DNA from: Rhina ancylostomus
Taxonomy: Eukaryota
NCBI GenBank assembly: GCA_030265395.1
Contig: JARFYF010000104.1
Span: 62,587,799 to 62,651,798 of the forward strand
DNA length: 64,000 bases
Direction: 5' to 3'
The position numbers and the translations under genes were made by a program. Of the stretch, positions 19,688 through 63,489 are shown in pieces (within the stretch, counting starts at the first letter, position 1; each line of letters opens with the position of its first letter). The notes below the pieces were generated by a model, which ran no database searches, had not been told where the DNA came from, and saw only the letters and a list, made by a program, of their open reading frames with translations.

Positions 19688-19770
19688 CAGGTAGGTTAAT
19701 TTGGGGTTTAAAATGGGTGGCGCGGACTCGTTGGGCCGGAAGGGCCTGTTACCACGCTGTAAATTTAAAA
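19688..19770 (+). mobile_element. SINE 3' fragment (same family as 16022)
   Basis: aaaatgggtggcgcggactcgttgggccggaagggcctgttacc. Confidence 0.75.
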
Positions 19771-25510: not shown

Positions 25511-25617
25511 TTAATTACTTTGAAAGGCTGGATTCTCAAAATGGGTGTATTTCATGTTTCTCCTCTGCCATGTCTGCCAAGCAAGGTAACCAAGTACGCC
25601 AGCAACAATCAATAGTG
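25511..25617 (-). CDS. Terminal exon: TM end plus cytoplasmic tail
   Basis: ccttttttcag/ [35 protein letters not shown]; aligns with the LDLR-family W..W..KN...F.NPxY pattern. Confidence 0.85.
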
Positions 25618-28600
25618 CTGAAAAAAGGATAGACAAAAGCATTAGAAGAAATATTCACATTTGCCACAAAAAACTAAACCAATTTTTCATTGTTGGTACC
25701 CAGCACTAATTTAGAGATTCTACCCGCAATTCTAAAAGTAAATGGATTATACATGCACATTTAGTACTAGTTTTGCACGGATAGGGTCTTGAACCAACGA
25801 TAAGGTCTTACAAATGGTAAAGATGACCCAAATAGTCGTAGATCCTTTGCTTGACTTTCCAAGTGAAGTATTCAAATGTGTATCTAAAAAGTAGAAAGCA
25901 AATGTTTCATCATTTCATATACAAGAAATTCAAAAAGGTAAGTTAGTTCTAGGCACTTCATAATCTTACTAAAAGCATCAAGTTGCATTCTTAAGGGGAT
26001 TCCATCTGTGTCATAGCCTGAAACATTGCTTCAGAATTTAAACCAAGTTGTTGCAGCTCCTTCATGGATACTTTAACCAGGAGATTAAAACAGTTCCAGT
26101 CAATGATGCAAATAGAGACCTTGTACAATGTCTTGCTTGAAATTTAGAAAAGGTTGAAATGGAAGAGTTTCAATATTACAAGTATCAAATATGCCCACTG
26201 GTATACTAGGATTGAGGTAAAAGCCCAATGCAAATGAAATTAAGGCACAAAGATCTGCTTAAACAGGATTGAAAAATTTCTGCTAGTTACTGTACTACCT
26301 CTGGGGCTAGCCAAAACTGTTGGCAAGATGGTACGTGATCTGGCAAACTCTTCTGAAGCAACACCTGCAGACATCTTTGTTGGAGCTGTATGTTCATTTA
26401 CTGTAAAGGAATAGGAATAGTTATGTACCAATTTTTTTTTGGTGTTAGCAACAAGTGAATAGGTTTTTAAAAAAGTGTTTGTCATCCTTTCTACATTTAT
26501 CCAGTCTTTAATTTAAAGCTAAATTTTCTAGTCTACAGTAGCAACTCAAACTCATTACATGGTATCCTTCAACCAGGAGGTTAAAATAGCTCATTCAACT
26601 CCATTTACAGTTCTAGAGCATCAAACCCAATTTAGGGGTTTAGGGTAGGAGAGAGATAACTTATATACTTGGAAGTGTAAATTATGCCCAATAAGCTTTG
26701 GTGCTTAATTGCTTGCATCAGCCTAGTGGTCAGGAGGTCTTAGACTTTAGATACAAAGTCTAATACTTTTCCTCCATTTTCAGACCTCTAGCGAATAGCA
26801 GGAGCATCACCAAGACCTGTATGTACCCAAGAAATGCCCCATCAATAGCATAAACATTAGCAAACACTTAAATACCTTAAAACACCCTTACATTAACAGC
26901 TAACAATGAACTTTGTCTGCCTTGGTAAACATCACATGGTCCTTCAATGTCTGGAACTGGACAAGGGGATACGGATGCTCACAGATTCCATGGGAGGTGA
27001 ACATAGGAAATACAAGTACACATGTTCCCACTGGAAACCTGAGTTTTTTGGTGCAGCTCAAAATTTTAGAAATTGAGGGTCTAGAGCTACGATTCTTGAT
27101 TACATGGATAGCATAGTGAATAATGAAGATGGAGTTTACGCCACCGTAGGAGAACTTCAGTTAGAACTGAACCCAAAATACTACCTTCCTGACAATGCTT
27201 CTCATCATCCTTCAACACCATTCCAGTTGGACACACGCAGGTATACTTTGGTGATCGACTGTTAATTTGAGGAGCAGGGAGGCACATGTGCTCACAAGTT
27301 CCAAACTCTGCACACCAGTTTTTCCCTAGAATGCACCAAATCAAAATTTCAGAAACATTCAAGCACAGGAATCAGCTTTAACTGGTGCACTGTAACCATT
27401 CATGCTTTACCAGTTTCACTCCATTTTGTTCTGGATTATCAACAATATGCACAAACAGCAAGTCATCATGCAAACAGGATACAAGTTTGGCAATACTGTC
27501 AGCATTTAGGAAGTTATGTTGTGTAGTTTCTCAACTGATGTTAAATTTGAAGAGTAAAGAAAAATTGAAGTGTGCTTTTCCATCTTTGGGCATGGAATGA
27601 ATTTCTGTATAGAAAAAGTGTACAGGAAGACATGCTAGAATACACTTCCACGTACCAAATCTGTCAAGGCAATTATACTGAAAGTTTCCAATAATCCCAC
27701 AAACCTGAAGAATTTTAACATGTCTGGCATTAAGGCAAATTCAAGAATGGACATTCCATAGCTGTTAGCTGTTTTATTGCTAAATATAATCAAGCAGGAA
27801 CCAAGTCACATTTACAGTACATAAAAGGAGGCTGCAGATTTCTTACCAGGTATCTGTATCAGCTCATGATAGATTATGATGTCTCCAGTTTCAACACTCG
27901 AGGCCAAAAGCTTCACATCACCTCCTGTATACTTGTTGGCTCCATAAATTCCTTTTCCCTCATCAGCCCAGTAAATATAATCCTGGAAATGCACATTTTG
28001 GGAAGATTCCACTTCATAAATCCATGGGAGGCTTTAGTTCAAGTATAACAACTCCTCACAAATGGACCATTAGAATAAATTTGAGATGAAGCTTGCAACT
28101 AAAGTTATAATTCTAGTCTTCAGTTGAAAACTTGGACGTCAGCCACTGAATTTTTGAACCATCTACTCTGAAGAGTTTCATCAAAACTAATCTTTAAAAA
28201 AAAAACATAGATTACCTCAAATAGAGTCACAGCACAAGGATGGGCAAGGAATTCTTGTGACTGCAATACTGTTCTTCTGTCCTGACCATTGAGATCTACA
28301 CTTGACAATGTGTGCAACTTTGCATCAATCCAATACAAGCGGGCTTTCATATAGTCTGTGGAAAAAAAGTTAAACCAATATTGACATAGTCCAACACCAG
28401 GCATTGCACCACTAAAAGAACCTTACTTACCAAGTGCAATGCCTTTTGGCCACTCAACTTTGGCAGCAAGCAAAAGTTGGCGATTAACACCATTCATGCC
28501 TGCTTTCTCGATCTTTGCTGGAGTGCCCCAGTCAGACCAGTAAATAAACCTTGAAAGAAATGGATCACACTTTGAACCAGTTTTTGAATGCATCTAGCAA

Positions 28601-31600
28601 GCTGCAACTCCTGCTGCATTGAAGAATAAACTTCAACTTAATGCAAAGGTAAATGAGCATTTTTAGCTGACCAGAGGATTTAAAAAAAGTGGCACTGCAA
28701 TTTAAAGAGACTGCTCTGGAACAAGTGTATAGACTGGCTCACTAGATTACAAGTGCCAAATAGAATGTTGTTAGATTACTATCGAGCCAGTGTTGATTCT
28801 CATGTGATCTGTTACTTATATCAATATTTTGCATAGAAGCAGAGCTTATTTGTTTAATCTTACAGTAATTTACTTCTACCAATTCCAAATTTCCACCTTG
28901 TACCTCAAGCTAATTTGAAAATGCACTACTACCATTTGGTTGGAAAATTGTATCATTACTTTGACTTGATATCAACACTTCACTTTGAAAAGAATAAGTG
29001 GACAGCATTGAAATTTCAAAAGATGAAAATACTGGATAAATCCAAATCAACACTAGTAAATTTACAAAACTAGAGCACGTAGTACCCTGATAGTGGATCA
29101 ACCACAACTGAAGCTGGTTCCCTTAGGTCCGTATCAAAAAGAATCTTCCTTTTCGTTCCATCAAAGTTAGCCACAGATAGTGTTTTAGTGCCACGATCAG
29201 TCCAGTAAACAAGTTTATTGATCCAGTCCACAGCAATTCCTTCAGGGATTTGCAAGTCATTAATTATGGATGTTCCATCTGCACGATCCCTTCCATTCAG
29301 TGACATGCTACAACAGAAGTACAAGGCAATTAGATAGATCTGCAAAATTTGCTTCCAATTTATTGCTAGAAGGATTGGATTTTGCAAACCAACAGTAGTG
29401 CAATAGGGATACTGGAGACTGCAGACACTAGAACCAGGAGCAACACACAAGCTGGAGGAACTCAGTAGGTCAGACAGGATCTATGGAGGGAGGTTGACAG
29501 TACTCAGCACCAACCTTGAAACTACTCGAGTTCCTGGTTTGTGCATCCACAAATTCCATCTTGCAAATGTTAAGTTATTAAAACTGAGGCTGCACTTCAT
29601 TCAGCAAGGGGGCCAGGGAGCAGGGTTGGTTTAAGTTAATCTCCATGATTTTGGCAATATGCTGGAAATCATCTCAACCTGGAGAACTGTTGATACTTCA
29701 AGATTGAGAGGCATCAGTATTTGTGGTCAACATAAAGTGATGAGCAATCAGGTCTTATCATTGGAACTTTAATAGATTAAATTTAATGCAATATGTCCAT
29801 TACCTGAAGATTGCCTGCTGGCCCACATCAGCCCAGAAGATTCTCTCCTCTGCAACATCAGCATCCAGTGCTACAGCATTTCTCAGCTGCACAGCAACTT
29901 GGGTGTACTCCTGGTGATGTAGTCCTAGCTTCCGAATGTCATGGCGATTCGTGAAGATCAAATAAGGCTCTTTTCCTAAAGTTCAAAGTTGTATTCGCAA
30001 CTCAAATTCCAAAATGCTGTTGTTTTACAATTTGGTTTAACAGACGACAAAAATTTAGTTGTGCATCATGAAACCTTGTTTCATTGTTTTGGTCCAAACT
30101 TGCCATTATAGTCCAAGGTGTTCCATTTAATAAAAGCTTACTTTCATATTTGTAATCAATATACCCAAACCAAAAATCTTCTCCCCACTTAAATTTAGGT
30201 AGATTTAAATTAGTGTATTTAATAGGAAATTGAATGGACTTCAAGCCCTGCAGGTAGTTTTATGCCATTGTCAATGACAAGTTGTTAATGAATGATCATA
30301 GATTCTGGATGTCATCTTGAGTAATAAACTGTAATAGAATGATCACAGGATACAAGAGGGAGCATCCAAGTAGCATCTTAAGACAATGCACCAAATCAAG
30401 GTAGAATTTGCTAAATCCAAAAGTAGCCAAAAATACAATTTCATCTTGTATATTAAACTGTTCAGTTAAAAATCTGGTCAATAAGAAGTGCCTGGATGCA
30501 AGGAGTTTAGATCTGCAAAACAGAACACCCCACCCAACCCCAAAAACATTAAGCTACTCCTATATAGGGAAATGGACTAGAAGTATATTAATTATCTTTT
30601 CTCTTGTCCCAGAAAAGACACACTTGTAGCAAATTACCAACACCCATAAGGAGCATTATCTTACATATGCACAGAAGTTTTATACTCGCCTATTGCCTTG
30701 CAAACTCCATTAGCTGGATCCATAAGGTAACCTGCATGACATTCACATTTGTAGCTTCCATCTGTATTAACACAAATTTGACTGCAAGATCCAGGATTGT
30801 GGCATTCATTAACATCTGAAAAAAAAGTCATTGGGTCCTTCATATTTGTAGTTCAGCAAGGCAATGAAGAATAATGGCTCTAACTAAACATCCTTTATAG
30901 TAAGCACCCAACCAATAGCAGTCCATGTAGTATATCCAAAGTCATACCACAGTTCTTAAGGGTTTATTCAAATCCCTATTAGTTTCCAAGTAAAGCCCTA
31001 ATTATGTTATTGGATTGTTCAGCATCTGGCTCACTGGGGTCATCTGTGCTTCCTTTAAACTCACCAGGTTTACCGAACAATAATACAATTTAACATACAA
31101 AAATTTATGTAGGTGTTTTGTCAATAAGAGTAATGCCTAATAGTCTGGGAAAAAATGTTTTACTGTCATCTCTAATCTTGCAATAGACAGGTCAAGGGCA
31201 CTTACCTCCACAGGTAGTCTTGTCAATCAATTCATAACCAGCAGGACATTCACATTCATAGCCAATGACAAGATCATGGCATATGTGGGAGCAGCCACCA
31301 TTCTTCTTTAAACATTCATTCTTTTCTACAGAACACAAATTGTCAAATTTCAATGTTACTACTCCATACACTATCCTCAAGCAGTAAAAAAATACTTGGT
31401 ACAGTTCAAAAGGAAACTGTCACATCCCGACTTAGACATTTCACTTAATTCCATAGCAATTTATAGTGACCAATTCTTGCACTGCATGGGGGAGAAACAA
31501 ATCTCAAAATTTAGTGCAAGTGGAATCACTTCAATATGAATGGATACCACTGCAGAGTTACAATGTTAGTGCACTCCTGATAGAATCGCTTAATCAATTC

Positions 31601-34600
31601 CAAACCCAATTTCATTTATTCTCCAAATCAGTGAATTTCTGTACACTCATTTTCCATAACAGATTAACATTTGAGCTGCAATAGTCAGAAAACTGAATGG
31701 AATCACCATATGGACTTCAGGATTTCATGCATTTCCAGCAGTTTAAATTCAAATATGCATGTTGAAACTATGCTTCAAGACAATGTCACTTACTGCATTC
31801 ACTGAGAATTTCATCACTCCAGTCTTTGCAGTCCTGCTTAGTATCACATACTTGGCTGATGTTTATGCACTCTCCACTATGACATTTGAAGTTAGTCGGT
31901 TCCATGCATTCTGAAACCAAGTATTGGAAGAAATTGTTCCACTCAATTTTTGGGATTAAAAGCATTGCCGGTAACTATACATGGCTCATGCCAAACANNN
32001 NNNNNNNNNNNNNNNNNNNNNNNNNNNNNNNNNNNNNNNNNNNNNNNNNNNNNNNNNNNNNNNNNNNNNNNNNNNNNNNNNNNNNNNNNNNNNNNNNCAA
32101 ACAAAAGAATGAACTTTGATAACATTGTCACGTTTCTCCATGTTAATATGAGCATTGGTTTTAGTGCAACTTTATAGACATGTTGGAAATTTTTGATACT
32201 TTTAGCAATTGACTCAGCAGCTGCTATTTCTGAAATTAGTTCTTAAGGGATGTACCTGCAACTATTATAGGGAGTGCTGCTGCTGCTGCGATGATGGGGT
32301 GGGGGGGGGGGGGTAGTACACTCCCATGGTCTTCAGGAGGACTGGGCAGGCCGATAAGGAACATGCCTGCTCCTTCATAAAACTTGTGGGAGTAGTGGGC
32401 ACAGATCCTTCAGATCCATTCTCAGGTGCTCAAGGGGAAGTTACCCAGGGAAAATCTCTGCAAGGATATGTAATCACTGCATGCCTTCATGATGCAAGTG
32501 CCCATATCTGCACCTGGGGGGTTGAAGGAAGAGAAGGCACCCCTTGTGTGGGTGACTTCACTAATGCAGTAGTGAGCAGCAGAATCCTGGCAGATCAGTT
32601 GCAGCTGCTCAAACTCTTAACACTGGAAAGCCAAAAGTGACGGAAGATTAGAGGGTCACAGGCAAAGTAGTCCAGACATACTGATCAAGTTGTGTTTGAG
32701 CTTTCCAATCAGAACAAATGCTGTTTGCATAGTGGCCCTTAAATAGCATGGCTTCAAGCGAAAATAGTAGTTAGCAAAACTTGGTTGCTTGCCAAGTAAT
32801 ACATTTTCAGAAAAGGTTGAAAATTTCACTGCAATGAAAAAATTTTGCACATTGTACTTTTGTTGATGCAAAAGTCCCCAAATTGCATCTAATGATTAAA
32901 GAAATATCCCAGCAAAATCAAGGAGTTTCCCAATTGGCACCTTGAATTGCTTTACTCAAGGTTAATCTTCATTTTTCAACACCATATTCTTGGGAGGAGA
33001 AAATTTCTAACCCCATATTACTAAACAAAAAGGCATGCTCACTTACTTTCCTGGCAGTTGATTTCATCATCACCATCACTACAGTCTCTAAATTGATTAC
33101 ATCTTTTTCTCCCAGGGATGCAACTGCCATCATTACATTGGAAGTGATCAGGTCTGCATGTACGAGGAGCTAAGAATTAGAATAGAGATACATTTAACTG
33201 CAATCACTTAAAATGGAAGGCCTTAAAGTGTGCAAAAGTGTATCAGTGCCACATTTGATAAATCACTTTTTTGATCAAGAAGAACATTTTTGCTATATTA
33301 AATGAGGCAGTTTCTGAAACCACCAGATTGCTTCCAGCATTTTGCAAGCATCTGTGCAGAATCTTTTCTTGTATCTCAGATCCACAAGCACATATGGCTT
33401 TGTCTAATTAAACTGTTTAGAAATAAGGTATTGAACTGAATAGAGCACAGGCATTTAGTTTTCTGTGCACTTCCCACTTTAGAAGTAGTGACTATTCTCT
33501 TAAAACCCAAACTGATAAACATTTCATCAACTTACAACTCAAATACATGTACTTTTATCAAAAGCCAAATTTAACTTAATTTTACACAGATTTAAGGTGG
33601 CCTTTGGGAACATGTCCAAGGAAGGATTTTCTGTTCATTCACTAAAGCTCAAGTCCAGAACACAAGCCACTAGATGCAATTGCATACTGAAATGTCATCT
33701 TGGCACTGGTAGAAAACAAATAACTTTGAAGTCACTTTCTCAAATCTCCTTAACACTGAATAGAGGCAAACTAAAAATCTATACTTCAAAACATTCATTC
33801 CATTTAACTACAGAAATATGGCAAGAAGGCAATGAAGGAAATAGGAACAGCTCATCAGGCATTTCAAGCCTGCTGTGTCACTTAATATCATGGTGGATCT
33901 ATGCTGCTTTTACTCATGTCATTTCTCCACACTATTCTTTGCTCTTTCAAATATCCATCATCACTTTATGATCTGGCCTCCACTACTCACCAGGGTAGAG
34001 AATTAAGCCCTCTGCAAGAAGAGATTTCAGTTTTAACTGCAAGNNNNNNNNNNNNNNNNNNNNNNNNNNNNNNNNNNNNNNNNNNNNNNNNNNNNNNNNN
34101 NNNNNNNNNNNNNNNNNNNNNNNNNNNNNNNNNNNNNNNNNNNCAGTTTTAACTGCAAGGGGTTGGTCATTTATGTCCCCTAGTTTGAAGGTCTCCCACT
34201 AGTGGGAGCATCCCAACACATATGCCTTAGGATCACTTGTTTGAACAAGATCTCCCCTTATTCTAAACTCAGGAATACAGGCCAAAACCATTTAGTCTCT
34301 TGTTAGGAGCTCTCTCGCATCCTAGGAATTAGCCTGGTAATCCTCCTTTGCTGCCTCCACATGTTTTAAATCAAGGAGACCAAATCTACGCAGTATTCCA
34401 TGCTAGGCTTTAACACCCTGTATAATTATAAAACCTCTCAAACTCCAATTCATTTGCAAATGAAGGCCAACATGCTGTTTACCTCAACTACTTGGACTTG
34501 CTTGCTAGCGAGCTTTGAGAGGAGCACGAACGAGGATACCTAAATCCTACTGTGCCGCGCTCACTTGCGGTTTCTTCATTTAGATAATCTGCCTTTTGAC

Positions 34601-52600: not shown

Positions 52601-55600
52601 ATCCACTGCAATTCCTGAGGGAATGCTCAAATTCTTAATGAGCAAAGAATGACCTGGAGTACCTTTGTATTTATTCATGGACATGCTGTTAAAAAGCAAA
52701 AAAATCTATATCAAATTTCCCCATACACCTTCATCGTTGTCAAGAGTAAGCAAAATGGTTTTGTAATGTGGAATTGTTATAATAAACTGACAACTTATAG
52801 TGTACTATTGTATACAAACCAGTCTCATACAAATTACTGCTAGAGAAAGATCCAATAGATGCCAGAAGTTTCCCCAGATTACTCAAGGAAAACATCAACT
52901 AGGTACTCCTGGCAAGTGAAAGATTTGCTGCAGGATTTCTACTTTGGGTTCGTAATTGACAAGGACTAATCCAGTTTTGGCTCGAGGGAAAATAATTTGC
53001 TCAACATTTGGATTTCAAGTGCAGCCTGCATTCAAGTCCAATCAAGAATAGAAGTGTTAGCTAAATCAGTGATGACCATTAAAACAAAACAACTTCCACA
53101 AGTATTCCAATAATTCTTCTTACCTAAATATTGCCTGACGTGTTAAGTCAGCCCAGAAAATCCTCTCCTCTGCAACATCAGCATCCAATACTACAGCATT
53201 TCTCAGCCGCATGGTTATCTGCTTGTACTCATGATGATGTAGCCCAAGCTGCCGAATATCATGGTGGTTTGTAAAGATCAAGTAAGGCTCTTTTCCTAAA
53301 GGAAAAATTCCAATCTAATTCCACCACCTTTTGCATTTATGCAAATGTTTTAATCAGTTAAGATAAAAAATTACAATCCAAACCTGCTTACATCAAAACC
53401 TCTGCGGCCCATGACATTGGGATTCAGCCACAATTTGCATTAGAAAAGCTTTACAGGAAGCAGCCAAATTCTGGCAATGTTAGGATGTGGCAAAGTGGTG
53501 CTTTTGGTCATTGTGTAGGCCAACAACCATTGCCCCTTAACACTTCTTTTCTTGACCCATGAAGAAAGAGGGCAATTACACCATCCCATTTAAGTTTTTC
53601 TAAAAATCTAGCCTTATTATCATTTAATCTTTAAACCACCTCCCCCACCCAAAAAACTTCCATATAGTTGGTCATTTGACAGTTGTACATACCTACAGCC
53701 TTGCACACTCCATTAGCCGGATCCATGCGATACCCCTCATGACATTCACATTTATAACTTCCTTTTAAATTGATGCAGATTTGGCTGCAGGTTGCAGTGT
53801 TTAGGCATTCATTGATATCTGTAAGAGAGCAGCATTTTCCTCACCACATTCAAAGGACAGAAGATACAAATTCTGAACATGGATTTAACTAGCACACTTA
53901 CCCCCACAGGTCTTCTCATCAACTAACTCAAAACCAGCAGGACAATCACATTCATAGTCAATGGGAAGATCCCGGCAAATATGAGAGCAACCACCATTGT
54001 TCACTAAGCATTCGTTTAGTCCTACAGAAAAATAAAAAGGTGGATGAGAGGGTAGAGGGATTGGAGACGGAAAAGTTAGTTTTCCCTCCCCACCAAAACA
54101 CTTCATCCAAAAGTAATATTTACCATGCACTTAGTCAATTTGAACTTAATAGCAGCTTCTTTATTGAACTCCTCACACCTTGAAAGAATGCCAGGAGTCA
54201 AATCAATGGATTACATTATAGCAATAGTCTCCTTAAGCACTAGAGGTCACACACATCCATCTTAAAATAGCAAGTAATCAATTTTTCAAATTTCAAAAAA
54301 AAAATCAGATTGATTAGCTGTTGCCAACTCAAATAATCTTTCCAGAACTTGGGAAATTAAATCCAAGTACACCATGAACACTTCTTTTAAACAATCGCTG
54401 CTAATAGCCATGAGGCAAGAACTAGTAATTCCAAGTCTTGGTTACTTGGTCATTTGCTGGAATAGTTTTAAAAAAAAAATGGGGACATGATAGGTTAATG
54501 CATTTTTGGAGTGTTTCAAATCGTTCAATAGCAAAACCAGTTGTAGCAGAAGATATTGGTTCAAGTCCAACAGCTGTATCTGAACAAATGCAATAGCCAC
54601 ATAGACAGGAACACCAGCATCTTGGCAGAGGATTTAAACCAATTTCAGTGTTGAGTACAAACTGAAAAGATGATGGAATTATGCAATCAATCAGTAACAG
54701 TTAAAAAAAAAATCCATGATGGATTAGATGCTTAGTATACCCAACTCAAAATTCCTTTCATTCAGGGAGAGAAGTGTAGCAGTTTAGATTGAATTAAAAG
54801 AGAGTTAGGAAACAGAGTGCCAAGAACAGGTACAGCAAGTTGCTAAACAAGGCAGCTTTAACAATAGCAATTTTGTTCAAGATGGAAGTTTTGAAGTATT
54901 CAGTTTTCTGAACTGTTGTTACACTTTCTGAAAGGAGGCATGGCTAGATCCAATGTAAAGTGGGCAGAAAATAAACCAAGTTGTCAAATGGAGAATGTTA
55001 GAACATCTTGAAGGAATTAAATATTGCAAGGTACAAAGGCCCATCAAAAAAGTAATTGTTCAGAAGGACAGGCAGGATTTGAGGATTTATTGATTTGCTG
55101 TTAACAACATGCACTCAAGTTGGCCTGATCCTCAATTGACAATATTGTCACAGGAGGCTTGACTCGATATCCATTTAAATATCTAACATTTAAACATTCC
55201 AAACTGAAAAAAAATCAAACTACAAAACAGCTAGCTGAATTCAGAGTTCTTTCAAATGCCATTGCTGTATACAGACTTGATACATTTACCCAATATCTCA
55301 TTTCAACATTGAAGCTTATACACATAGTATGCAATGAAAACAAGGCAGTAGAACAGACTACAAATACACTAAAATTGACAATCCCATACCCCCATGACTG
55401 GTGGGAAAAGACAGATTTTCTGAATTGGGTATTACCATTTTACTTTTACACAAGTTAGAGTAATAAATTGTCCAGGTATTGCAGGGAGTTGAGAGTGCAG
55501 GAACTAGGGCTCCAGGTGAGCCACATGCTGAACTGTTATGAAAGCAGACAATTAGTTTTCTGTAGTTTCAGAAGGTATTATAGATTCTACTTTTCTCAAA

Positions 55601-58600
55601 TTACTACTTCTAAGATTCAGGTAAAGTTAACAAGCACATACACCATATACTTTGTAAATTAAAAAGCAAATCCAAAATGTTTAGCCATTTGCTTGTCACT
55701 TATAGAAGTGTGGAGTTTGGGATAGGAAGGGTTCCAGCATCAGACTTGGAAAGATGTAGAATTTGTGCAGAAAATCTAGCGTGTTGTCTAAGCCTTAAAA
55801 ACTTGGACAAATTCTTTATCCAGTTGAAGAGGGCTCAGATTCAAGGTAGGAAAAAGGAGGAAAGCATGTATACGAGATAGGAATTAGACGGCACAAGTTG
55901 GTAGTGTGGAGAATGTGGAGTGAACAAAGCCTTCAAGATTTTGATGAGGGGGAAAATGTTGTAAAGAAACTGGTACCAACAGGATTGGTCCTCAGCAGCT
56001 GAAGTCTACGAGTCAAATATCTGTAGTGCTTTGCTGTTCCAGAGTTCCTCTGCAGGCCAACTCCAAATTGTACTTGCTTTTAATGTAACAAATATTCTAA
56101 TGTGGCAACTATAATGACTAGATCCAGAGTCGGGCATTGGTCCATTATACATGCAAAAGTCACAATGTTTACAATACCAAGAAATTTGGTGTTCGATTGC
56201 AATATTGAAAATGCTACATGCTTCCTTGGGCACGATGGCATTAGGGTGCACCAAGCAAAGACTTAATTTGTTAGGTTAATTTGCTAGACTTGATTTGCTA
56301 GGTTCTCTTCTCCCACCCCCTCCTTTTCAAGTGTATGTTCTTGGATTCAAGGCAGTCAGGTTCCCAATACAGTCCATAACCAGTATTTAAAAGAATGTTG
56401 GAAGATTATACAGTCTCAAGAGGAAAGAGGCAAGGTGATTAGTTTTCTTGGTTGTTTGACAGAAGATGCCAAGCACAAAATGTTTCTTCAAGGCTGAAAA
56501 GTCCACTTACGGCATTCAAAGGGTTCATCACTCCGATCTTTACAGTCCCATTTGTGGTTGCAGACTTTACTTATAGCTATGCATTCTCCACTTTGGCATT
56601 TGAACTCATTTGGACCTGTACAGTCTAAATTTGAAAGAAAACATACAAGTTCAAATCCAATAAAACAGTTACAAATTTGTATACATCTTAAAACTGTGCA
56701 CCTACCATTCTGACAGTGGACTTCATCAGTACCATCAGAGCAGTCTGTAAATCCATTACATTTCTTGGTTCCAGGAATACAACTACCATCACCACATCTG
56801 AAGTGATCTGGTCTACATGTCCGCAGAGCTAAAATCAAGTCAAATTGTTAATCTATAGAAAATAGTAATCAAATATTTATACAATCCTTGTAATTATCCA
56901 TCTTCATTTCAAATAGAAATTCAATTACTTTGTTTTATGCTCCAACAAACTGCTCAAAATATTTAATTATATTCTTGCAACAAACCTCTGGACTAGAGTC
57001 AGAACCAAAGGATATTTTCATCTTGAGAAAAATGCATTTACTATAAATTAAACTAAACATGAAGTATAAAATCCCAAATGCCCATTGACAAGTGGATTGC
57101 TGTCTAAATATCCATTTCAATTAATAACACATTGGTTATTCAGCACAATTTTAAATAAAATCATCCCTTCTCCTGTCGACTGTGACATTTAAAGACTTGC
57201 CCAGAAAACTAAATTCAGACATTTACAAGCTAACTGCATCACAACAATTTAAGTCTGGCTGCAAGTTACTTACAACAATTAACTTCATCACTTCCATCTT
57301 TACAGTCACTGTCTCCATCACAGTGCCAGCCATGATTGATGCATTCGCCAGAACCACAGAAGAACTCACTGGGAGAGCAGGTTGCATGAGGAGGAGAAGG
57401 GTACCCACAATGTTCTGGAGATTCATCAGATTGGTCGGCACAGTCAACATTGTTGTCACAGACCCAACTCAAGGAAATGCATTCAGAATTATTGCATTGA
57501 AACTCATGACGGCCACAGGAATGGGGAACACAGTCTTTTTCATCACTTCCATCACCACAGTCATCTTCACCATTGCAGATAAATGCCTTAGAAATGCATT
57601 GACCACTGGTGCAAGTGAATTCAAGTATACTGCAATTAAAAGAGCCTGAAAATAAGAGGTCTACTATTAGAATTGGCTAAACACTAATAACTTATGAGAA
57701 AACATCAGAAGGGCTTGATAATAATCTATGATTTAATTATGAAAATACATCCAGAGTCACTGGACAAAATCAAGAATGAATGGGAAAGCAAACTCCAGAT
57801 ATCTATACCTACAGAGGCGTGGAAGAAAATTCTTCATTTAGTTAATACATCTTCAATGTGTGCCAGANNNNNNNNNNNNNNNNNNNNNNNNNNNNNNNNN
57901 NNNNNNNNNNNNNNNNNNNNNNNNNNNNNNNNNNNNNNNNNNNNNNNNNNNNNNNNNNNNNNNNNNNGCACAACACGGTGGGCTGAAGGGCCTGTATTGT
58001 GCTGTATTGTTCTATGGTTCAACACAGGTTCCATCAAGTTGGTAGACTGAAAATTTGACCAACTTCAGGATGTAAAAGGACTAAATTATGAGAAAGAAGA
58101 GCTTGCATTTCTTCTGTGGTTTTCAGACCACCCTAAAGAGATTTCCACTCAACAAATGACCTGTTTTAGTGTGGACTCTTTTGTCATGGAGTTGTCCAGC
58201 GCAGAAACAGGCCCTTCAGCCCACCGAGTCCATGCTGACCACCAAGGGCTATCAAAGGCAAGAGAGCATAGGTATGAGAGGAAGGAGTTTTACAGGGGAT
58301 CTGTGGGGGAGAAGCTTTTTTTTTTACACAGAGAGTGGTTGACATCTGGAACTCTAGATTCAGGTTATCAAGATTCAAGAAATAATCTAAGGGGATATTA
58401 AAACAGAAGAAGTCGACAAGCAAGAACTCTACTTACAGGGCATCTGAAGACAGTGCTGGAGCACAGAAACCAAATGTGGGTAGGCATCCGTGTGACTTAG
58501 CTTCTTCCGAATCAGGTCAAACATCTGACTAGCGCTCCTGGTGTCAATGTGTACCTGAAATGTAGCAGGAATGAGCTGCATCTCATTGTTTTACAACAAG

Positions 58601-61600
58601 ACAGGACTGTCGTTCAGCACAACAGTCCACAGGAGGAGGACATCCAGCACTCCAACAAGGTGCATCTTTATAGCGCCTTTAACCATCCTAAACCCTTCTA
58701 AGGTGCTTCACACAGCACTAACTGAAACTGTTACCAAGGCATGAAAGGGCCAGGCCAACAAATGTTCAGTTTTTAAGGTAAGGAGCAGAGAAAGGTAAAT
58801 AGGTAGAAAGATTTAAGAATGGAATTTCAAAGCTTGGGGCTTTGGCAACGCAAGGCATCGCCACCAATGGTAGAGCAAATAAATCTGGGGTGGACAAGCA
58901 GCCAGAACTGGAGTAACACAAAGATCTCAAATTTTTGTGGTTGGAGAGGATTACAGAGGTGATGAGGGCAAAGTAATTGGTAATTGATTTATTAACGTCA
59001 CATGTACCGAGATACAGTGAAAAAACTTTGTTCTGCATGCCATCCATACAGAGCATTCCAAACCATAAGTACACCAAGGTAGTACAAAGGGGAAGACAAT
59101 AACAGAATGCAGAATATTGTGTTACAGTTACAGAGAAAGTGCAGTGCAGGTAGACAATAAGGTGCAAGGCCCATGATGAGGTAGATTGTGAGGGCAAGAG
59201 TTCAATTTTATTGTACAACAGGTCCATTCGAGAGTCTTATAACAGCGGGACAGAAGCTGTCTTTGAGCCTGGTGGTGCATGTTTTCAAGCTTTTGTTTCT
59301 TCTGCCAGAGGGGAGGGGGGAGAAGAGAGAATATTCGGGGTGGGAGGGGTCTTCGATTATGTCGGCTGCTTTCTTGAGGCAGCGGGAAGTGTAGAGCAAG
59401 TCAGTGGACGGGAGGCTGGTTTCCATGATGGACTGGGCTTTGAAAAGGGGCAGCACTAAAATGAGGGCTCTGCTTAATTTGGAGCTGATACAAGGCATAG
59501 AGGAATGATGAGTGAACCAACCTCAGTGAGTTAGGGGGGCATCAGCAACCAAGATTGAGATGGCCTCAAATGTACTGAGAGAAAATTGAATGAGGTTGGC
59601 CAAGCGTTCATTGGGATAATCACATCAAGAAGTATAGGCTGAAGGTTAGCGAATGTTGAGGTACAGTCGATCAAAAGCTAACAGAGCAGCAGACCAGTTT
59701 TGAGGGTTTGAGCAGCCTCCTCCTGAAATGCTATGTCCTTGCAAGCCTTTGAGGCTTGATTAACTATTGCCCTTATACAGGACCACACGTAGCACTGTGT
59801 GCAGTAAAGGTTTACCTACTCAAGGAAAGATACACCTGCTAGAAAGGGGATACAACAAACGTCTTCTGGACCAATTCCTGGGATGGCAGGACTATTGGAT
59901 GAGCTGAGATTGGGTTGATCAGGACTGTATCCAACAGAATTCCGAAGAATGGGAGGGGGATCTCATTGAAACATACATTTTCCATGTACATATGAAAAAC
60001 ATACATGTGTGAAAAACATAATTTTTCACATGATGTAGATCCCCCTTCATTAACTTTTTAATTCGGAGGATCGGAGTTGACGACATAATCGCTTTGTTTC
60101 TATTGGGAAATTTTGGCCCAGTTTTTTTTAAATTTTTGTTTGTTTAGTTTATATTGTTTATAATTTTTTTAATATTTTGATTTGGGTTTTTTCTTTTTTC
60201 TTTTTTTTAATGTATATAATAAACCTTTTTTCTTTCCTTTCTTTTATACTTTCTTTATTAACTAAGAGATTGTTGGACTTTGTTTTTTCTATATTTTATT
60301 GAATGATTATCTAAGATTTGAGTGATAACCAGATCTCTCTGTAAGATATGTACAAACTTTGATGCCATACACCATTTGTATTGATTTGAAACCAATAAAA
60401 AAGATTGAAAAAGAAAGCAATCATTCCTTGGCTACTACATTACAGATAAGATACCTTTATTAGTCACATGTACATCGAGACACACAGTGTAATACATCTT
60501 TTGCGTAGAGTGTTCTGGCGCCAACATAGCATGTCCACAACTTCCTAACCGGCATGTCTTTGGAATGCAGGAGGAAACTAGAGCACCCAGAGGAAACCCA
60601 CGCAGACAGAGGGAGAACATACAAACTCCTTACAGATAGCAGCCGGAATTGAACCTGGGTTGCTGGTGCTTTAATATCATGACACTAACTGCTACATTAT
60701 CGTGCCTCCAGTATACAAACAGCTTTGTGCATTCCTATGCATTAAATGACTATTGCTGTCTGGAATTTCTATTGGCTAGGATCTTAGGATGCAGAAATTT
60801 AGTAATTACATCTCATTGCCATATAAATTAAAGTCCCTTTGTCTTGCATTCATTTTCATCCCCCACATTTCAAAGTCAAAAATACAACACTGGTAATGTC
60901 TCCACAGCCAAATTAACATTTGTGAGAGAATATTAGAATTGATGTAATTTGCAAGCCATGCTTCTCGTGAGCAAGAACATGTCAATGTTCCTTGATTTGC
61001 AACAGTCTAGTCTGTTAATCACTACAAGTAAAAACATGCTAATCTTCTATCTCTGCCCTTCCCCCACCCTCACACACGAAAGGTCAAACTTGCTTTTAAT
61101 ACATTTGACCCTCTGTACAGGCAGGCACAGTAGTGTAGTGGTTAGTGTAACACTTTACAGCGCCAGCGACCTGGGTTCAATTCCAGTTGCTGTCTGTAAG
61201 GAATTTGCACTTTCTCCCCGTGTCTGTGTGGGTTTCCTCTCACATTTCAAAGATGTATGGGTTAGGAAGTTGTGGGCATGCCAATGTGAGCACTGGAAGT
61301 GTGGCGACACTTGCAGGCTGCCCCCAGAACACTCTACGCAAAAGATCCATTTCAGTCTTTAGAGTTAATTTGGTTGGTCTGTTAAAACACAAGCTATTAG
61401 CATACCACAGTTCTCTTCATCACTGCCATTCTCACAGTCCTTTCCTCCATCACATTTCCAGGAATCAGGAATACACTGAAGAGTGCCAGGGCCGCAACTG
61501 ATTTCATTCAAATTACATTGTCTCAGGTCTGAAAAAAAATAAAAAGAGCACAAGTTAATCAAACAATCTGCAGCAGGTCAGAGATACATCATGTACTTGA

Positions 61601-63489
61601 GACTTAAATGCTGGATGAAACTCAAACACCTTCATTGAAGTTAAATTCTTGGGGCAAATTTCTGCAGGTAAATCGGCCAAACCAAAAAAAAAATTCTAGA
61701 TTTTTTTTTATAATTCCAATTCTTGATCAAAATCAACACAATTTTATAGTGTCACTAAAACAGCATATCAATACATTGTGTAAAGAAACAATGCTATGTT
61801 TTAATTTCTGTTTGTAAGGATATGGGTATCTCTAAAATTGACACATCATACAGATATATCAAGCAATTAGAAAGGCAAGAAGTACATTGGCCTTTATTGC
61901 AAGAGGATTGAACAGAAGAGCAAAGATGTCTTGTTCCAGTTGTGTGGCTTTGGTGAGACTATCTGGATATCATACAGGTCTGGTTCCACCTAGCCAAGGA
62001 CATACTTGTGATTGCGTGCAGCAAAAGTACTGCAGATTGATTTTTGGGATTGTGGGTTTGTCATTACAAGGAAATTAAAACAAACTGACTCAGTGGAATA
62101 GATGCTGGGATGATTTTCCTTGGGCTAGGGAAATCTAGAACTAGGAGGCAGTGTTTCACAATAATGAGTCAGCCATTTAAGACAGATCAGAATTTTGCCC
62201 CACTAGGTAGTGAATGCTGGGATTCTCTACCCCAGGAGGGTTGTCAAGCAAATTCAAAATACTAGGTACTTAAAGAAGGGAATCGCCTTAATGCAAGGGA
62301 GACAGACACTGGGGTAAAGTGACNNNNNNNNNNNNNNNNNNNNNNNNNNNNNNNNNAGAGTAGACACAGAGCTAAATTGCCTGCTGCTGCAAAGACTTGG
62401 TAGGATAAATACCAAGTATTGAAGACCACTAGGGGTGTCTCACCTAGCCACAAAGTGGTCAGTTATTTAGGACAAAGCTGTTGGATGGGCAGTTATTGCC
62501 CAAACTCAAAATATTGCTGGAATTTGGCCTCTAGAGGCATTTATTTCCACTTTCCCAAGCCATCAAGACCAACTATGATCTACGGTAAAGTGAAGGCTTC
62601 TGCTGCAGTTATATTGCCATGAAACAGATTGTCAAAATGTAGTATAGTTGAATCTTGAGTGTAAGCAATAAAATCAAAAAGTTAACAGGCAAATAGTTAA
62701 GGTGGAAAATTGCCCTTTATTGAAAAAGCGAGCCGAATTTTAGAAATAAGGAAGTTTTATTACAATCGCACAGGGCACTGGCAAGGTCACTCCTGGGGTA
62801 CTGTACACAATTTGGACAAGGGGACCAAAAAAAAAGAGATAGTAGCATTGGAGGCAGTCCAAAAGAGATTTACCAAGCTAAATCCTGGGATGCAAGTGTC
62901 ATCCTGCAAAGAGGACAAGTGGTTGCGTCCACTTTTTTTTGGAGTTAAGAACAAGGAATGATCTTGTTGAAGTACTCAAAATCCCTGAGGTGGTGTAACA
63001 GGGCAAATGTCAAGATGCTCTCACTTGTGGGAGGGTCTCAAATATGGGGACAGTTTTGAGGCAAGGTGCCAGTCATTTAAAGCCAGAGGTTCATACAAGT
63101 TCCCTCACAAAGGATAGTAAATTTCTGGAATTCTCTACCCCAGAGAGTTGGAATTCATTACAAGTATAAAGCAGCTATGGATAATTCAAGAAAAAAAGGG
63201 AATGGAGAGCTATGGGAATCTGGAAAAGTCACTAAGGCTTGGGGTAGATTAGCCAAGATCATATTGAATGGTAGGGCAGGCTTGAGGGGACAGGCAAGCT
63301 ACACCTGCACCTATCGTGTGCAAAGTGATCTAGAAAGCTTCCATTTCTGCCAAACATTATACTCACGACAGACTTCTGGACTTTCATCTGACCCATCTTC
63401 ACAGTCAGGTGTGCCGTCACATTCCCATTTACTGGGCACACAATGTCCACTGCGGCATACGAACTCAGAAGTTCCACATGTAACCTGAA
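25511..63489 (-). CDS. VLDLR: VLDLR-family receptor with triplicated ectodomain module (41 exons in window, 5'-partial, ~2090 aa); probable chondrichthyan VLDLR paralogue / vitellogenin-receptor candidate
   Basis: All exons join in frame with AG/GT (two GC) sites. Propeller exon sizes of 172/222-225/119/140/136-142 bp match the LDLR/VLDLR gene plan. LDLa sequences resemble VLDLR LA2-LA8 ([22 protein letters not shown]). There is only one TM/tail, at 25511-25883. The symbol denotes the family; the exact paralogue is uncertain. Confidence 0.9.
25812..25883 (-). CDS. Juxtamembrane exon plus start of TM
   Basis: ctttttag/ [24 protein letters not shown] /gtaag; 72 bp. Confidence 0.85.
26299..26400 (-). 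CDS. Ser/Thr/Pro-containing stalk exon (O-linked sugar domain-like)
   Basis: Strong acceptor (ttcctttacag); [34 protein letters not shown]; weak donor G/gtagta; 102 bp, phase 1-1. Confidence 0.6.
27185..27325 (-). CDS. Module 3 exon: EGF-C
   Basis: [47 protein letters not shown]; 141 bp. Confidence 0.9.
27847..27982 (-). CDS. Module 3 exon: YWTD part 5
   Basis: [21 protein letters not shown]...IYHELIQIP; 136 bp. Confidence 0.9.
28216..28355 (-). CDS. Module 3 exon: YWTD part 4
   Basis: [23 protein letters not shown]...[11 protein letters not shown]; 140 bp. Confidence 0.92.
28431..28549 (-). CDS. Module 3 exon: YWTD part 3
   Basis: [20 protein letters not shown]...VEWPKGIAL; 119 bp. Confidence 0.92.
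29086..29307 (-). CDS. Module 3 exon: YWTD part 2
   Basis: [24 protein letters not shown]; 222 bp. Confidence 0.92.
29804..29975 (-). CDS. Module 3 exon: YWTD part 1
   Basis: [24 protein letters not shown]...RIFWADV; 172 bp. Confidence 0.92.
30690..30815 (-). CDS. Module 3 exon: EGF-B (GC donor)
   Basis: [30 protein letters not shown]; 126 bp; donor ATAG/gcgagt. Confidence 0.88.
31206..31325 (-). CDS. Module 3 exon: EGF-A
   Basis: [39 protein letters not shown]; 120 bp. Confidence 0.92.
31794..31910 (-). CDS. Module 3 exon: LDLa (LA8)
   Basis: [38 protein letters not shown]; 117 bp. Confidence 0.9.
33047..33169 (-). CDS. Module 3 exon: LDLa (LA7)
   Basis: [38 protein letters not shown]; 123 bp. 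Confidence 0.9.
33835..35990 (-). mobile_element. Old CR1 LINE (endonuclease to 3' end) in a module 3 intron
   Basis: [12 protein letters not shown] (APE C-terminus), WQME.NM.KC..IHFG and CR1 3' features; heavily decayed. Confidence 0.7.
34865..34952. repeat. Perfect 44-bp tandem duplication
   Basis: gtttttaatccatttccaagactctgacaccttgggattttaat x2. Confidence 0.9.
36030..36496 (-). CDS. Module 3 exon: three LDLa (LA4-6), interrupted by a 100-N assembly gap
   Basis: LDLa coding sequence on both sides of gap 36275-36374. Confidence 0.85.
37275..37397 (-). CDS. Module 3 exon: LDLa (LA3)
   Basis: [40 protein letters not shown]; 123 bp. Confidence 0.9.
37877..37996 (-). CDS. Module 3 exon: LDLa (LA2-like), first exon of module 3
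   Basis: [39 protein letters not shown]; 120 bp. Confidence 0.9.
38404..38556 (-). CDS. Module 2 exon: EGF-C
   Basis: [23 protein letters not shown]...[16 protein letters not shown]; exon ends at 38404 or 38410, both phase 1. Confidence 0.85.
39256..39394 (-). CDS. Module 2 exon: YWTD part 5
   Basis: [23 protein letters not shown]...HHELTQP; 139 bp. Confidence 0.9.
40273..40412 (-). CDS. Module 2 exon: YWTD part 4 (GC donor)
   Basis: [23 protein letters not shown]...[11 protein letters not shown]; 140 bp; donor GAG/gcaagt. Confidence 0.88.
40513..40631 (-). CDS. Module 2 exon: YWTD part 3
   Basis: [20 protein letters not shown]...IEWPHGIAL; 119 bp. Confidence 0.92.
41152..41376 (-). CDS. 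Module 2 exon: YWTD part 2
   Basis: [22 protein letters not shown]; 225 bp. Confidence 0.92.
41990..42800 (+). mobile_element. Highly decayed CR1 RT fragment
   Basis: tggaagttaatctagacaaatgcaagattatgcatt and related CR1 remnants. Confidence 0.55.
43291..43462 (-). CDS. Module 2 exon: YWTD part 1
   Basis: [19 protein letters not shown]...IFWADL; 172 bp. Confidence 0.92.
43775..43900 (-). CDS. Module 2 exon: EGF-B
   Basis: [30 protein letters not shown]; 126 bp. Confidence 0.92.
44281..44397 (-). CDS. Module 2 exon: EGF-A
   Basis: [38 protein letters not shown]; 117 bp. Confidence 0.9.
44745..46250 (+). mobile_element. CR1 LINE ORF2 remnant
   Basis: [33 protein letters not shown] and YINDL motifs with frameshifts. 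Confidence 0.9.
46403..46522 (-). CDS. Module 2 exon: LDLa (LA8)
   Basis: [37 protein letters not shown]; 120 bp. Confidence 0.9.
47757..47879 (-). CDS. Module 2 exon: LDLa (LA7)
   Basis: [38 protein letters not shown]; 123 bp. Confidence 0.9.
48211..48585 (-). CDS. Module 2 exon: three LDLa (LA4-6)
   Basis: ORF 48203..48598; 375 bp. Confidence 0.93.
49063..49182 (-). CDS. Module 2 exon: LDLa (LA3-like), first exon of module 2
   Basis: [39 protein letters not shown](C); 120 bp. Confidence 0.9.
49517..49660 (-). CDS. Module 1 exon: EGF-C
   Basis: [21 protein letters not shown]...[17 protein letters not shown]; 144 bp. Confidence 0.9.
50410..50551 (-). CDS. Module 1 exon: YWTD propeller part 5
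   Basis: [21 protein letters not shown]...IYHELIQP; 142 bp. Confidence 0.92.
51556..51695 (-). CDS. Module 1 exon: YWTD propeller part 4
   Basis: [22 protein letters not shown]...AVFE; 140 bp. Confidence 0.92.
51772..51890 (-). CDS. Module 1 exon: YWTD propeller part 3
   Basis: [39 protein letters not shown]; 119 bp. Confidence 0.92.
52461..52685 (-). CDS. Module 1 exon: YWTD propeller part 2
   Basis: [24 protein letters not shown]; 225 bp. Confidence 0.92.
53124..53295 (-). CDS. Module 1 exon: YWTD propeller part 1
   Basis: [15 protein letters not shown]...RIFWADL; 172 bp. Confidence 0.92.
53693..53818 (-). CDS. Module 1 exon: EGF-B (Ca-binding)
   Basis: [42 protein letters not shown]; 126 bp. 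Confidence 0.92.
53902..54021 (-). CDS. Module 1 exon: EGF-A
   Basis: [39 protein letters not shown]; 120 bp. Confidence 0.92.
56511..56624 (-). CDS. Module 1 exon: LDLa (LA8)
   Basis: [37 protein letters not shown]; 114 bp. Confidence 0.9.
56706..56828 (-). CDS. Module 1 exon: LDLa (LA7)
   Basis: [38 protein letters not shown]; 123 bp. Confidence 0.9.
57274..57645 (-). CDS. Module 1 exon: three LDLa (LA4-6)
   Basis: [13 protein letters not shown]...[10 protein letters not shown]; 372 bp open. Confidence 0.92.
57690..57867 (+). mobile_element. L1-clade LINE ORF2 C-terminal fragment
   Basis: [34 protein letters not shown] resembles fish L1 ORF2; an AT-rich L1-like 3' tail is at ~60040-60415. 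Confidence 0.55.
58975..59430 (-). mobile_element. Rex1/Babar-like LINE 3' end
   Basis: [48 protein letters not shown] followed by a 3' UTR ending aataaa. Confidence 0.8.
60445..60708 (-). mobile_element. tRNA-derived V-SINE with non-CR1 tail
   Basis: B box (gggttcaattcc), V-core, tail ...tcgatgtacatgtgactaataaag. Confidence 0.8.
61120..61357 (+). mobile_element. tRNA-derived V-SINE (same family as 60445)
   Basis: ggcacagtagtgtagtggttag...gggttcaattcc...V-core. Confidence 0.8.
61406..61528 (-). CDS. Module 1 exon: LDLa (LA3-like)
   Basis: [40 protein letters not shown]; 123 bp. Confidence 0.92.
61860..62260 (+). mobile_element. Decayed CR1 3' fragment
   Basis: LAFIARG..; tggaattctctacccc-like 3' region. 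Confidence 0.6.
62680..63310 (+). mobile_element. Decayed CR1 3' fragment
   Basis: [16 protein letters not shown]; 3' UTR-like end just before the LDLa exon donor. Confidence 0.7.
63367..63489 (-). CDS. Module 1 exon: LDLa (VLDLR LA2-like)
   Basis: [39 protein letters not shown]; cag/gtgagt; 123 bp. Confidence 0.9.

Follow-up and report, generated by a model that had tools for sequence, protein, structure and literature searches.

The window analysed here, a stretch of 64,000 nucleotides (nt) from the ray Rhina ancylostomus (contig JARFYF010000104.1, positions 62,587,799 to 62,651,798), is AT-rich (GC 38.9%), includes 17 runs of N and carries on its minus strand, from 63489 to 25511, 41 exons of one receptor gene. 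These exons encode three diverged copies of a module consisting of an LDLa cluster, EGF-A, EGF-B, a six-blade YWTD propeller and EGF-C, followed by a single stalk, a single membrane span and a short tail, with totals of 20 LDLa, nine EGF and three propellers in the window. On the evidence given below, they very probably represent 41 of an estimated 43 coding exons of an orthologue of VLDLRc2, a chondrichthyan very low density lipoprotein receptor, with its three modules in one protein. Genes of this kind have been on record since 2023, and the window adds no new one.

Exon model of the locus

To delimit the gene we used the translations of the module 3 exons as phmmer queries against all six-frame stop-to-stop segments of the window. 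Matches were found on the minus strand only, between 63481 and 27186, and comprised 20 LDLa, three each of EGF-A, EGF-B and EGF-C, and three sets of five propeller exons (15 in all); no LDLR-family exon was matched on either strand of positions 1-25000. Splice sites set by consensus and by agreement among the three module copies gave 38 ectodomain exons, and the addition of three C-terminal exons brought the model to 41. Of the 40 introns, 38 are GT-AG and two GC-AG, the phases chain through, and no stop was found in 40 of the 41 exons, the remaining one being interrupted by an assembly gap. Thirteen exons belong to module 1 (63489-49517), 12 to module 2 (49182-38404), which is without the exon of the LDLa called 'a', and 13 to module 3 (37996-27185); a stalk exon (26400-26299) and two exons carrying the membrane span follow. 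An initial annotation of the window had proposed a VLDLR-type ectodomain triplicated within one reading frame, with limits at 63489, 49517/49182, 38404/37996, 27185 and 25511, and all of these coincide with ends in the exon model.

The exon lengths of module 1 (123, 123, 372, 123, 114, 120, 126, 172, 225, 119, 140, 142 and 144 nt) follow the plan of LDLR and VLDLR (123, 123, 381, 123, 123, 120, 126, 172, 228, 119, 140, 142 and 153). The introns between modules measure 334 nt (module 1 to 2) and 407 nt (2 to 3), both keeping phase 1, and the search between modules revealed neither exons for a stalk, membrane span or tail nor one resembling a signal-peptide exon. Six cysteines are present in each of the 20 LDLa repeats (120/120), and the coding model contains one hydrophobic span only. 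In a Pfam run on ten exon translations, the triple-LDLa exons matched Ldl_recept_a with 139.6, 138.3 and 106 bits and propeller exons matched Ldl_recept_b with 62-67 bits, both above the curated cut-offs, while the EGF-C exons scored 28.1, 30.5 and 34.5 bits against FXa_inhibition, for which the cut-off of 33.4 lets one pass. No Pfam family was matched by the membrane/tail exon. The modules differ from each other in roughly a quarter to a third of their residues, and other species have a separate counterpart for each of them, so that the triplication is not an assembly duplicate.

As reference for exon alignments we took P0001, the sawfish RefSeq protein XP_051876534.1 (2141 residues). All 41 exons align in order to its residues 50-2141, with 1943 of 2054 residues identical (94.6%). 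The window therefore holds the equivalent of 2092 residues, in good agreement with the figure of about 2090 (with nine EGF and three propellers) advanced in the initial annotation. Residues 1-48 of P0001, which contain one further LDLa, have no counterpart within the window. Because, in four further species, VLDLRc2 orthologues open with a signal peptide (MIPF...) and then that LDLa, the signal-peptide exon and the first LDLa exon are placed beyond base 64000, and the full protein would have 21 LDLa; a count of 20 thus holds for the window, where the LDLa pattern is 7-6-7, and falls one short for the whole protein, whose eighth module 1 LDLa and signal peptide are known from orthologues only.

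Splicing across modules and integrity of the gene

We then compared sequencing runs with positions 48100-54050 of the window. No run recorded as RNA contains the stretch, and for the source organism a search for RNA runs found none. Two runs from one related organism that are guessed to be RNA (X1 and X2), in which 6% of the words of the stretch are present, each gave an identical contig of 2754 nt, about 3% diverged from the window. This contig shows five joints (48585|49063, 49182|49517, 49660|50410, 50551|51556 and 51695|51772) that are exact exon ends of the model, all of them with CT..AC ends, that is, GT..AG on the minus strand. At the joint 49182|49517, module 1 passes from its EGF-C straight into the first LDLa of module 2. 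Downstream of 48211 the contig continues for 1729 nt, where weaker cross-matches to module 1 exons put the 3' end of the module 2 propeller exon P9 at record position 1072, the exact value expected from the exon lengths; calculated likewise, the contig would stop within module 3. As for genomic reads, DNA contigs of run X3, possibly the source sample itself, cover 48264-51872 with no differences, unbroken across the module boundary, and one DNA contig of 872 nt from run X4 (a different organism, about 2% diverged) covers 49030-49893 across the same boundary. In-frame splicing of the modules onto one stalk, span and tail, which the initial annotation had also claimed, is thus upheld by the phase chain, by the ordered alignment to P0001 and by the joint between 49517 and 49182, and the three-module structure is confirmed as real and intact here.

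These data bear on the possibility that two or three tandem genes have been merged by gene prediction, modules 1 and 2 being secreted or truncated receptors. Predictors do merge tandem paralogues, as the main text of Ohishi et al. (PMC10015161) notes for Ensembl VTG models, and RNA did not show the joint from module 2 to module 3. However, in the spliced contig the EGF-C of module 1 and the LDLa of module 2 are linked through canonical splice sites, no terminal or signal-peptide-like exon lies between modules, and the inter-module introns are short and keep their phase. Moreover, three-module proteins have been modelled in at least six species, and the catshark entry is named c2. We therefore consider such a merger extremely unlikely.

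It is also very improbable that the gene is a young pseudogene, intact-looking but non-functional. For such decay one could cite the exon interrupted by a gap, the lack of an RNA run of the source organism and the nature of the differences between the spliced contig and the window, since 12 of the 22 listed change an amino acid and 10 are synonymous. Nevertheless, the sole indel in the related transcript is a 3-nt insertion that keeps the frame, 40 exons are free of stops, every splice site can be used, the LDLa cysteines are complete and the protein is 94.6% identical to the model of a relative.

Exons of the three modules and assembly gaps

All exons lie on the minus strand and, where no other evidence is named, each was placed by splice sites and phase and by its alignment to P0001. 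In module 1, the exon of LDLa 'a', the second LDLa of the protein (63367..63489), has AG/GT sites in phase 1-1, encodes six cysteines and is identical to P0001 residues 50-89 at 38 of 40 positions, as is LDLa 'b' (61406..61528) to residues 91-130. The triple-LDLa exon of 372 nt (57274..57645), which contains three Ldl_recept_a stretches (139.6 bits), aligns with residues 132-253, and LDLa 'f' (56706..56828) shares 39 of 40 residues with P0001. LDLa 'g' (56511..56624) is preceded by an open intron of 81 nt (56625-56705), in frame and without a stop, that is retained in sawfish RefSeq isoform X1 (P0151, 2168 residues) as 27 extra residues between two LDLa. EGF-A (53902..54021, 120 nt), EGF-B (53693..53818, 126 nt) and the propeller exon P9 (53124..53295, 172 nt) were in addition found by phmmer. 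P10 (52461..52685, 225 nt; Ldl_recept_b, 66.7 bits) is identical to P0001 residues 473-546 at 72 of 74 positions, and P11 (51772..51890, 119 nt), identical at 39 of 39, is linked in the spliced contig from its 3' end (51772) to 51695. Both ends of the last three exons are joints of that contig: P12 (51556..51695, 140 nt; 51695|51772 and 50551|51556), P13 (50410..50551, 142 nt) and EGF-C (49517..49660; 49660|50410 and 49182|49517), the latter spliced straight to module 2 and scoring 28.1 bits with FXa_inhibition, below the cut-off.

Module 2 begins with an LDLa of the 'b' type (49063..49182), with contig joints at both ends and its sixth cysteine in a split codon. Next come the triple-LDLa exon of 375 nt (48211..48585; joint 48585|49063; 138.3 bits in Pfam), LDLa 'f' (47757..47879) and LDLa 'g' (46403..46522). 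EGF-A (44281..44397, 117 nt), EGF-B (43775..43900) and P9 (43291..43462) were again matched by phmmer, P9 being the exon whose 3' end falls by arithmetic at position 1072 of the contig record. P10 (41152..41376; Ldl_recept_b, 62 bits) shares 72 of 74 residues with P0001 and is followed by P11 (40513..40631), P12 (40273..40412), P13 (39256..39394, 139 nt) and EGF-C (38404..38556), after which a 407-nt intron would lead to module 3, the junction to 37996 being predicted from phase and from P0001.

In module 3, LDLa 'a' (37877..37996; 38 of 39 residues identical to P0001) and LDLa 'b' (37275..37397) precede the triple-LDLa exon that contains the gap (36030..36496), which is followed by LDLa 'f' (33047..33169), LDLa 'g' (31794..31910), EGF-A (31206..31325) and EGF-B (30690..30815), both also found by phmmer. 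The propeller comprises P9 (29804..29975; 55 of 56 identical to P0001), P10 (29086..29307, 222 nt; Ldl_recept_b, 67 bits; 72 of 73 identical), P11 (28431..28549), P12 (28216..28355) and P13 (27847..27982, 136 nt), and EGF-C (27185..27325) reaches 34.5 bits with FXa_inhibition, above the cut-off. The GC donors follow P12 of module 2 (GAG|gcaagt after 40273, at 40271-40272) and EGF-B of module 3 (TAG|gcgagt after 30690, at 30688-30689); both introns have an otherwise strong donor context, and the exon ends at these junctions agree with P0001.

The C-terminal part starts with a stalk of 33 residues rich in serine, threonine and proline (26299..26400; AG/GT, phase 1-1), identical at 32 of 33 positions to P0001 residues 2050-2082. 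The membrane span begins in a short exon (25812..25883; 22 of 23 identical), which encodes its first half after the juxtamembrane stretch. The last coding exon (25511..25617) encodes the second half of the span and a tail of about 21 residues with FENPAF, ends in a TAA at 25513-25511 and matches the C-terminus of P0001 at 33 of 34 positions.

Among the assembly gaps, only that at 36275-36374 is exonic. It lies in the module 3 triple-LDLa exon, in the linker between the first and the second repeat, and its flanks are each open in their own frame, with 6 and 12 cysteines and with two Ldl_recept_a stretches in the 3' part (106 bits). Since the flanks amount to 367 read bases (372 and 375 in the sister exons) and align to P0001 residues 1456-1494 and 1497-1576, at most about two residues are hidden in this gap. 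The gaps at 31998, 34044, 44122, 45167, 47986, 57868 and 62324 are intronic, that at 31998-32097 lying 88 nt upstream of module 3 LDLa 'g', and the gap at 25385 is 64 bases past the stop. As judged against P0001, which the exons cover without a missing stretch save for split codons, no exon is hidden in a gap.

Orthology with VLDLRc2

All searches with window sequence were made exon by exon, and one propeller exon was used to search a library of 1.84 billion representatives. The top match was P0001, at residues 473-547; the other matches were mostly multi-propeller LRPs, because scores add up over blades, and only P0001 was decisive. P0001 in turn is 73% identical over 100% of the length to the entry 'very low density lipoprotein receptor c2 [Scyliorhinus torazame]' (2165 residues) and 62% identical to the c3 of the same species (3423 residues), and a search with it retrieved three-module proteins of 2075-2164 residues in other rays, in sharks and in a chimaera, under varied LRP-like names. 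When the three catshark receptors were compared per exon, c2 was the best for 29 of the 41, c3 for eight and c1 for four, corresponding to 1469, 1375 and 1324 identical residues out of 2014. Summed exon identity was 73% with catshark c2, 68% with c3, 66% with VLDLRc1, 62% with coelacanth VLDLR and 49% with an LDLR-like protein, and the stalk, membrane-span and tail exons matched catshark c2 best.

Local hidden Markov model scans showed the architecture LA8-LA6-LA7 (numbers of LDLa per module) plus a short FENPxF tail in five of six c2 proteins, that of Narcine being LA8-LA5-LA6. The same scans found five cores in each of three c3 proteins, and one core with LA8 in eight c1 and eight bony-vertebrate VLDLR proteins. 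The hallmark of VLDLRc2, three ectodomain units in one protein, is present here as a phase-consistent exon chain, together with the core features of the LDL receptor family (class A repeats with six cysteines and an acidic motif of the SDE type, class B YWTD repeats with EGF flanks, a single span and, for the NPxY-type tail motif, NPAF, an NPxF variant). Its three clusters, three propellers and truncated FENPAF tail set the product apart from VLDLR proper (LR8).

In the PDB, the module 1 triple-LDLa exon matched a VLDLR chain (8ufb_V) with 274 bits, LDLR with 180 and LRP4 with 174, and that of module 2 gave 261.9, 170 and 159 bits, respectively. The propeller exon P10 alone did not separate VLDLR (93-95 bits) from LRP8 (94-108 bits).

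Phylogeny of the modules

Per-module phylogeny, a check proposed with the initial annotation, was carried out by maximum likelihood on 398 alignment columns from 56 module cores, each running from EGF-A to EGF-C, with LRP4 as the root and P0001 as a 94.6% identical stand-in for the modules of the window. The partial models P0034, P0008, P0162-P0164, P0287, P0288 and P0321, LRP4 cores 2-4 and all LRP1/LRP2 proteins were left out, and the tree contains no LRP8 or LRP13. All 36 c2/c3 module cores formed one clade (support 97/96), apart from LRP4 and from the LDLR-like protein, and the cores grouped with VLDLR away from LRP4 (branch length 1.08, support 100/100). Modules 1, 2 and 3 of P0001 fell into the matching c2 module clades (100/99, 100/100 and 100/99). 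Since sharks as well as rays are present in each of these clades, the build of three modules is older than the split between the two groups. The five modules of c3 formed clades of their own, distinct from those of c2. A build-up from a VLDLR template, as first proposed from the exon plan, is borne out by the single c2/c3 clade and by the order of exon identities with c1, coelacanth VLDLR and the LDLR-like protein.

Two further proteins deserve comment. The three modules of the chimaera protein XP_007890808.1 (P0161, 2164 residues) were unresolved at the base of the module clade; this protein combines the c2 LDLa pattern 8-6-7 with a c3-like membrane span. The skate protein P0160 (Amblyraja radiata, 2154 residues, 'LRP2-like'), with an LDLa pattern of 7-7-7 and a c3-type membrane span, was rejected as a c2 because its three modules group with c3 modules 3, 4 and 5; therefore, either the c3 of skate has three modules or the model omits the first two.

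With these results we considered whether the window could contain the last three of five VLDLRc3 modules, with two more upstream of 64000. Upstream of the first exon, whose phase-1 acceptor suits an internal module, the window extends for 511 bases only, and eight exons have their best match in catshark c3. On the other hand, P0001 has just one more LDLa upstream, directly preceded in the four other c2 species by the MIPF... signal peptide, and module 2 has six LDLa as in c2 and not the seven of c3 internal modules. As the three C-terminal exons are closest to c2 and the modules belong to c2 and not c3 clades, we regard this reading as highly unlikely.

The RefSeq names of the relatives ('LRP1-like', 'LRP2-like', 'LRP4-like') would imply a member of the LRP1/LRP2, or else the LRP4 or LRP13, lineage, and LRP2 and LRP4 chains do top the total bit scores in the PDB. 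The LRP2 totals are higher because many repeats are summed; when single-cluster receptors are compared over the triple-LDLa exons, VLDLR (274 and 262 bits) exceeds LDLR (180/170) and LRP4 (174/159). In addition, the cores go with VLDLR and away from LRP4 in a tree built without LRP1, LRP2, LRP8 and LRP13, and there is no LDLa after the last propeller, unlike in LRP13. The probability of an LRP lineage member is, in our opinion, close to nil.

The timing of the split between c1 and the modules is not decided by the core tree. Grouping of c1 with the module clade received a support of 74/99.7, and the alternative of c1 with bony-vertebrate VLDLR, leaving the modules outside, fitted equally well (p-AU, approximately unbiased test, 0.54). 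A c2/c3 lineage that split off no later than when cartilaginous and bony fishes diverged, was lost in the bony fishes and represents an early uptake-only receptor, instead of a late offshoot of VLDLR specific to sharks, is conceivable but rather unlikely.

Cytoplasmic tail

The tail of about 21 residues (coding positions 25514-25580) ends in ...FENPAFQSN, three residues after FENPAF. In every c2/c3 protein examined the tail was likewise truncated, reading FENP[A/V/L]F and then 3-10 residues, and all 16 c1 (n = 8) and bony-vertebrate VLDLR (n = 8) proteins had FDNPVY followed by about 30 further distal residues. Phenylalanine can substitute for tyrosine in the internalisation of LDLR. The truncated tail goes unmentioned in the main text of PMC10015161, where the terms 'NPxY', 'cytoplasmic', 'intracellular' and 'LRP13' do not occur, supplements apart.

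Surroundings of the gene

Positions 1-25000 contain no open frame of more than 156 residues (no search was aimed at other genes there), and the 25 kb downstream of the gene look intergenic in the window. Decayed frames resembling reverse transcriptase, from an interspersed element named by eye, were seen at 9754-10334 (minus) and at 44900-45166 (plus); the latter sits in a module 2 intron and abuts the gap 45167-45266. A short repeat of coding-like appearance (…GNRPF.PNESAPPILN…) occurs at both 19688-19771 and 23554-23674 (minus), each time beside an assembly gap, and is probably an interspersed element found where contigs end. At the intronic positions 48119-48150 the summed contig depth rose to about 32,500 (X3) and 37,200 (X4), compared with 6-8 elsewhere, with many loose ends, which indicates a high-copy repeat.

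Discussion

The closest known system is that of Ohishi et al. (2023; PMC10015161), whose main text reports that chondrichthyans have three VLDLR genes, placed in tandem, and that the ectodomain is present as three units in VLDLRc2 and as five in VLDLRc3. [quoted passage not shown] A report of extra cartilaginous-fish VLDLR paralogues had been mentioned in the initial annotation; it is evidently this one, the gene in the window being of the c2 type, and it was the sole match in the literature from 2022 on for VLDLR, vitellogenin and shark. The receptor shares with catshark VLDLRc2 (2165 residues) the three units, the LA8-LA6-LA7 pattern, the one span, the short FENPxF tail and module-by-module orthology; it differs in coming from a ray-lineage species and in that the first two coding exons are not in the window. 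VLDLR/LR8, both c1 and bony-vertebrate, has the same domain order and exon-size plan and, as judged from the orthologues, the same MIPF... signal start and eight LDLa in module 1, with a summed exon identity of 62-66%, but it has a single module and a long tail with FDNPVY. The VLDLRc3 proteins (P0155, P0153 and P0154; about 3420-3490 residues) are built from the same type of module and have a short FENPxF tail, but contain five modules and a membrane-span sequence of another type.

More distant systems resemble the receptor in part. Several LDLa clusters and propellers in one chain are also found in LRP1, LRP2 and the insect vitellogenin receptors; their clusters and propeller groups, however, are unequal and not whole-ectodomain repeats. 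LRP1 and LRP2 carry four unequal LDLa clusters split by propeller groups in more than 4400 residues, unlike the equal VLDLR-type modules in about 2140 residues found here, a layout that sets the receptor apart from them. Lrp13 of teleosts and amphibians is described as ovary-dominant and proposed to take up vitellogenin beside Lr8 (PMC9935665, PMC11772764), as having 7-13 N-terminal LDLa plus one C-terminal LDLa in about 1234 residues (PMC9935665) and as clustering far from Lr8 (PMC12480657). By that description the present receptor, which has no LDLa between the last propeller and the membrane span, is not an Lrp13, and an architecture scan found no Lrp13-like protein among the proteins gathered. 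Twenty representatives taken as LDLR/LRP8/LRP13 references proved to be invertebrate LRP4-like proteins, bacterial propellers or unnamed and were discarded.

The product would be one type-I membrane protein of about 2140 residues, with the layout [8 LDLa, EGF-A, EGF-B, YWTD propeller, EGF-C], [6 LDLa, same], [7 LDLa, same], stalk, span and tail. By analogy with LDLR and VLDLR, each LDLa cluster would bind lipoprotein-type ligands through calcium-caged acidic residues. As each cluster has its own propeller, the part that in LDLR displaces the ligand at endosomal pH, each module would bind and release on its own, and several ligand molecules, or a number of sites on a single vitellogenin dimer, could be held by the receptor. 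For uptake, the tail would recruit clathrin adaptors through its one FxNPxF motif; that both the tyrosine and the distal part of the tail have been lost speaks against tyrosine-linked signalling of the VLDLR type. On the basis of the ovary-only expression in the catshark (PMC10015161), vitellogenin or other yolk lipoproteins taken into oocytes would be the likely ligand. The role in yolk-precursor uptake put forward in the initial annotation coincides with what that paper proposes.

Some points weigh against the reading of the window as a three-module VLDLRc2 orthologue that acts in this way. The 5' end of the gene is outside the window, no tandem neighbour (c1 or c3) is seen within it (25 kb are covered downstream and 0.5 kb upstream), and the reading frame across the gap 36275-36374 cannot be read from the assembly. 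The RNA nature of runs X1 and X2, which gave the spliced contig, is a guess, and both belong to a different organism. The joint 38404|37996 between modules 2 and 3 is predicted from phase, the 407-nt intron, the RefSeq model and contig arithmetic and not from RNA, and the model needs two putative GC donors, placed by protein agreement. With 12 of 22 changes nonsynonymous, constraint on parts of the LDLa linkers is only moderate. Finally, ligand binding, acid release, FENPAF-dependent uptake and a role in yolk loading would hold as far as LDLR/VLDLR biology and the catshark expression can be carried over to this receptor.

For annotation, the value of the locus lies in an exon-level map of a gene for which the models of relatives bear misleading names (LRP1-like, LRP2-like, LRP4-like), in marking which assembly gap touches coding sequence and in one inter-module splice at the transcript level. 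To what was described in 2023 it adds the conserved truncated NPxF tail and the module orthology that links sharks with rays. A tail without its tyrosine and distal part may hint that c2/c3 receptors kept uptake and dropped signalling. A whole receptor ectodomain, binding cluster and own release propeller included, multiplied in tandem within one protein is a striking case and, as already pointed out in 2023, a candidate for how cartilaginous fishes load their very large, yolk-rich eggs.

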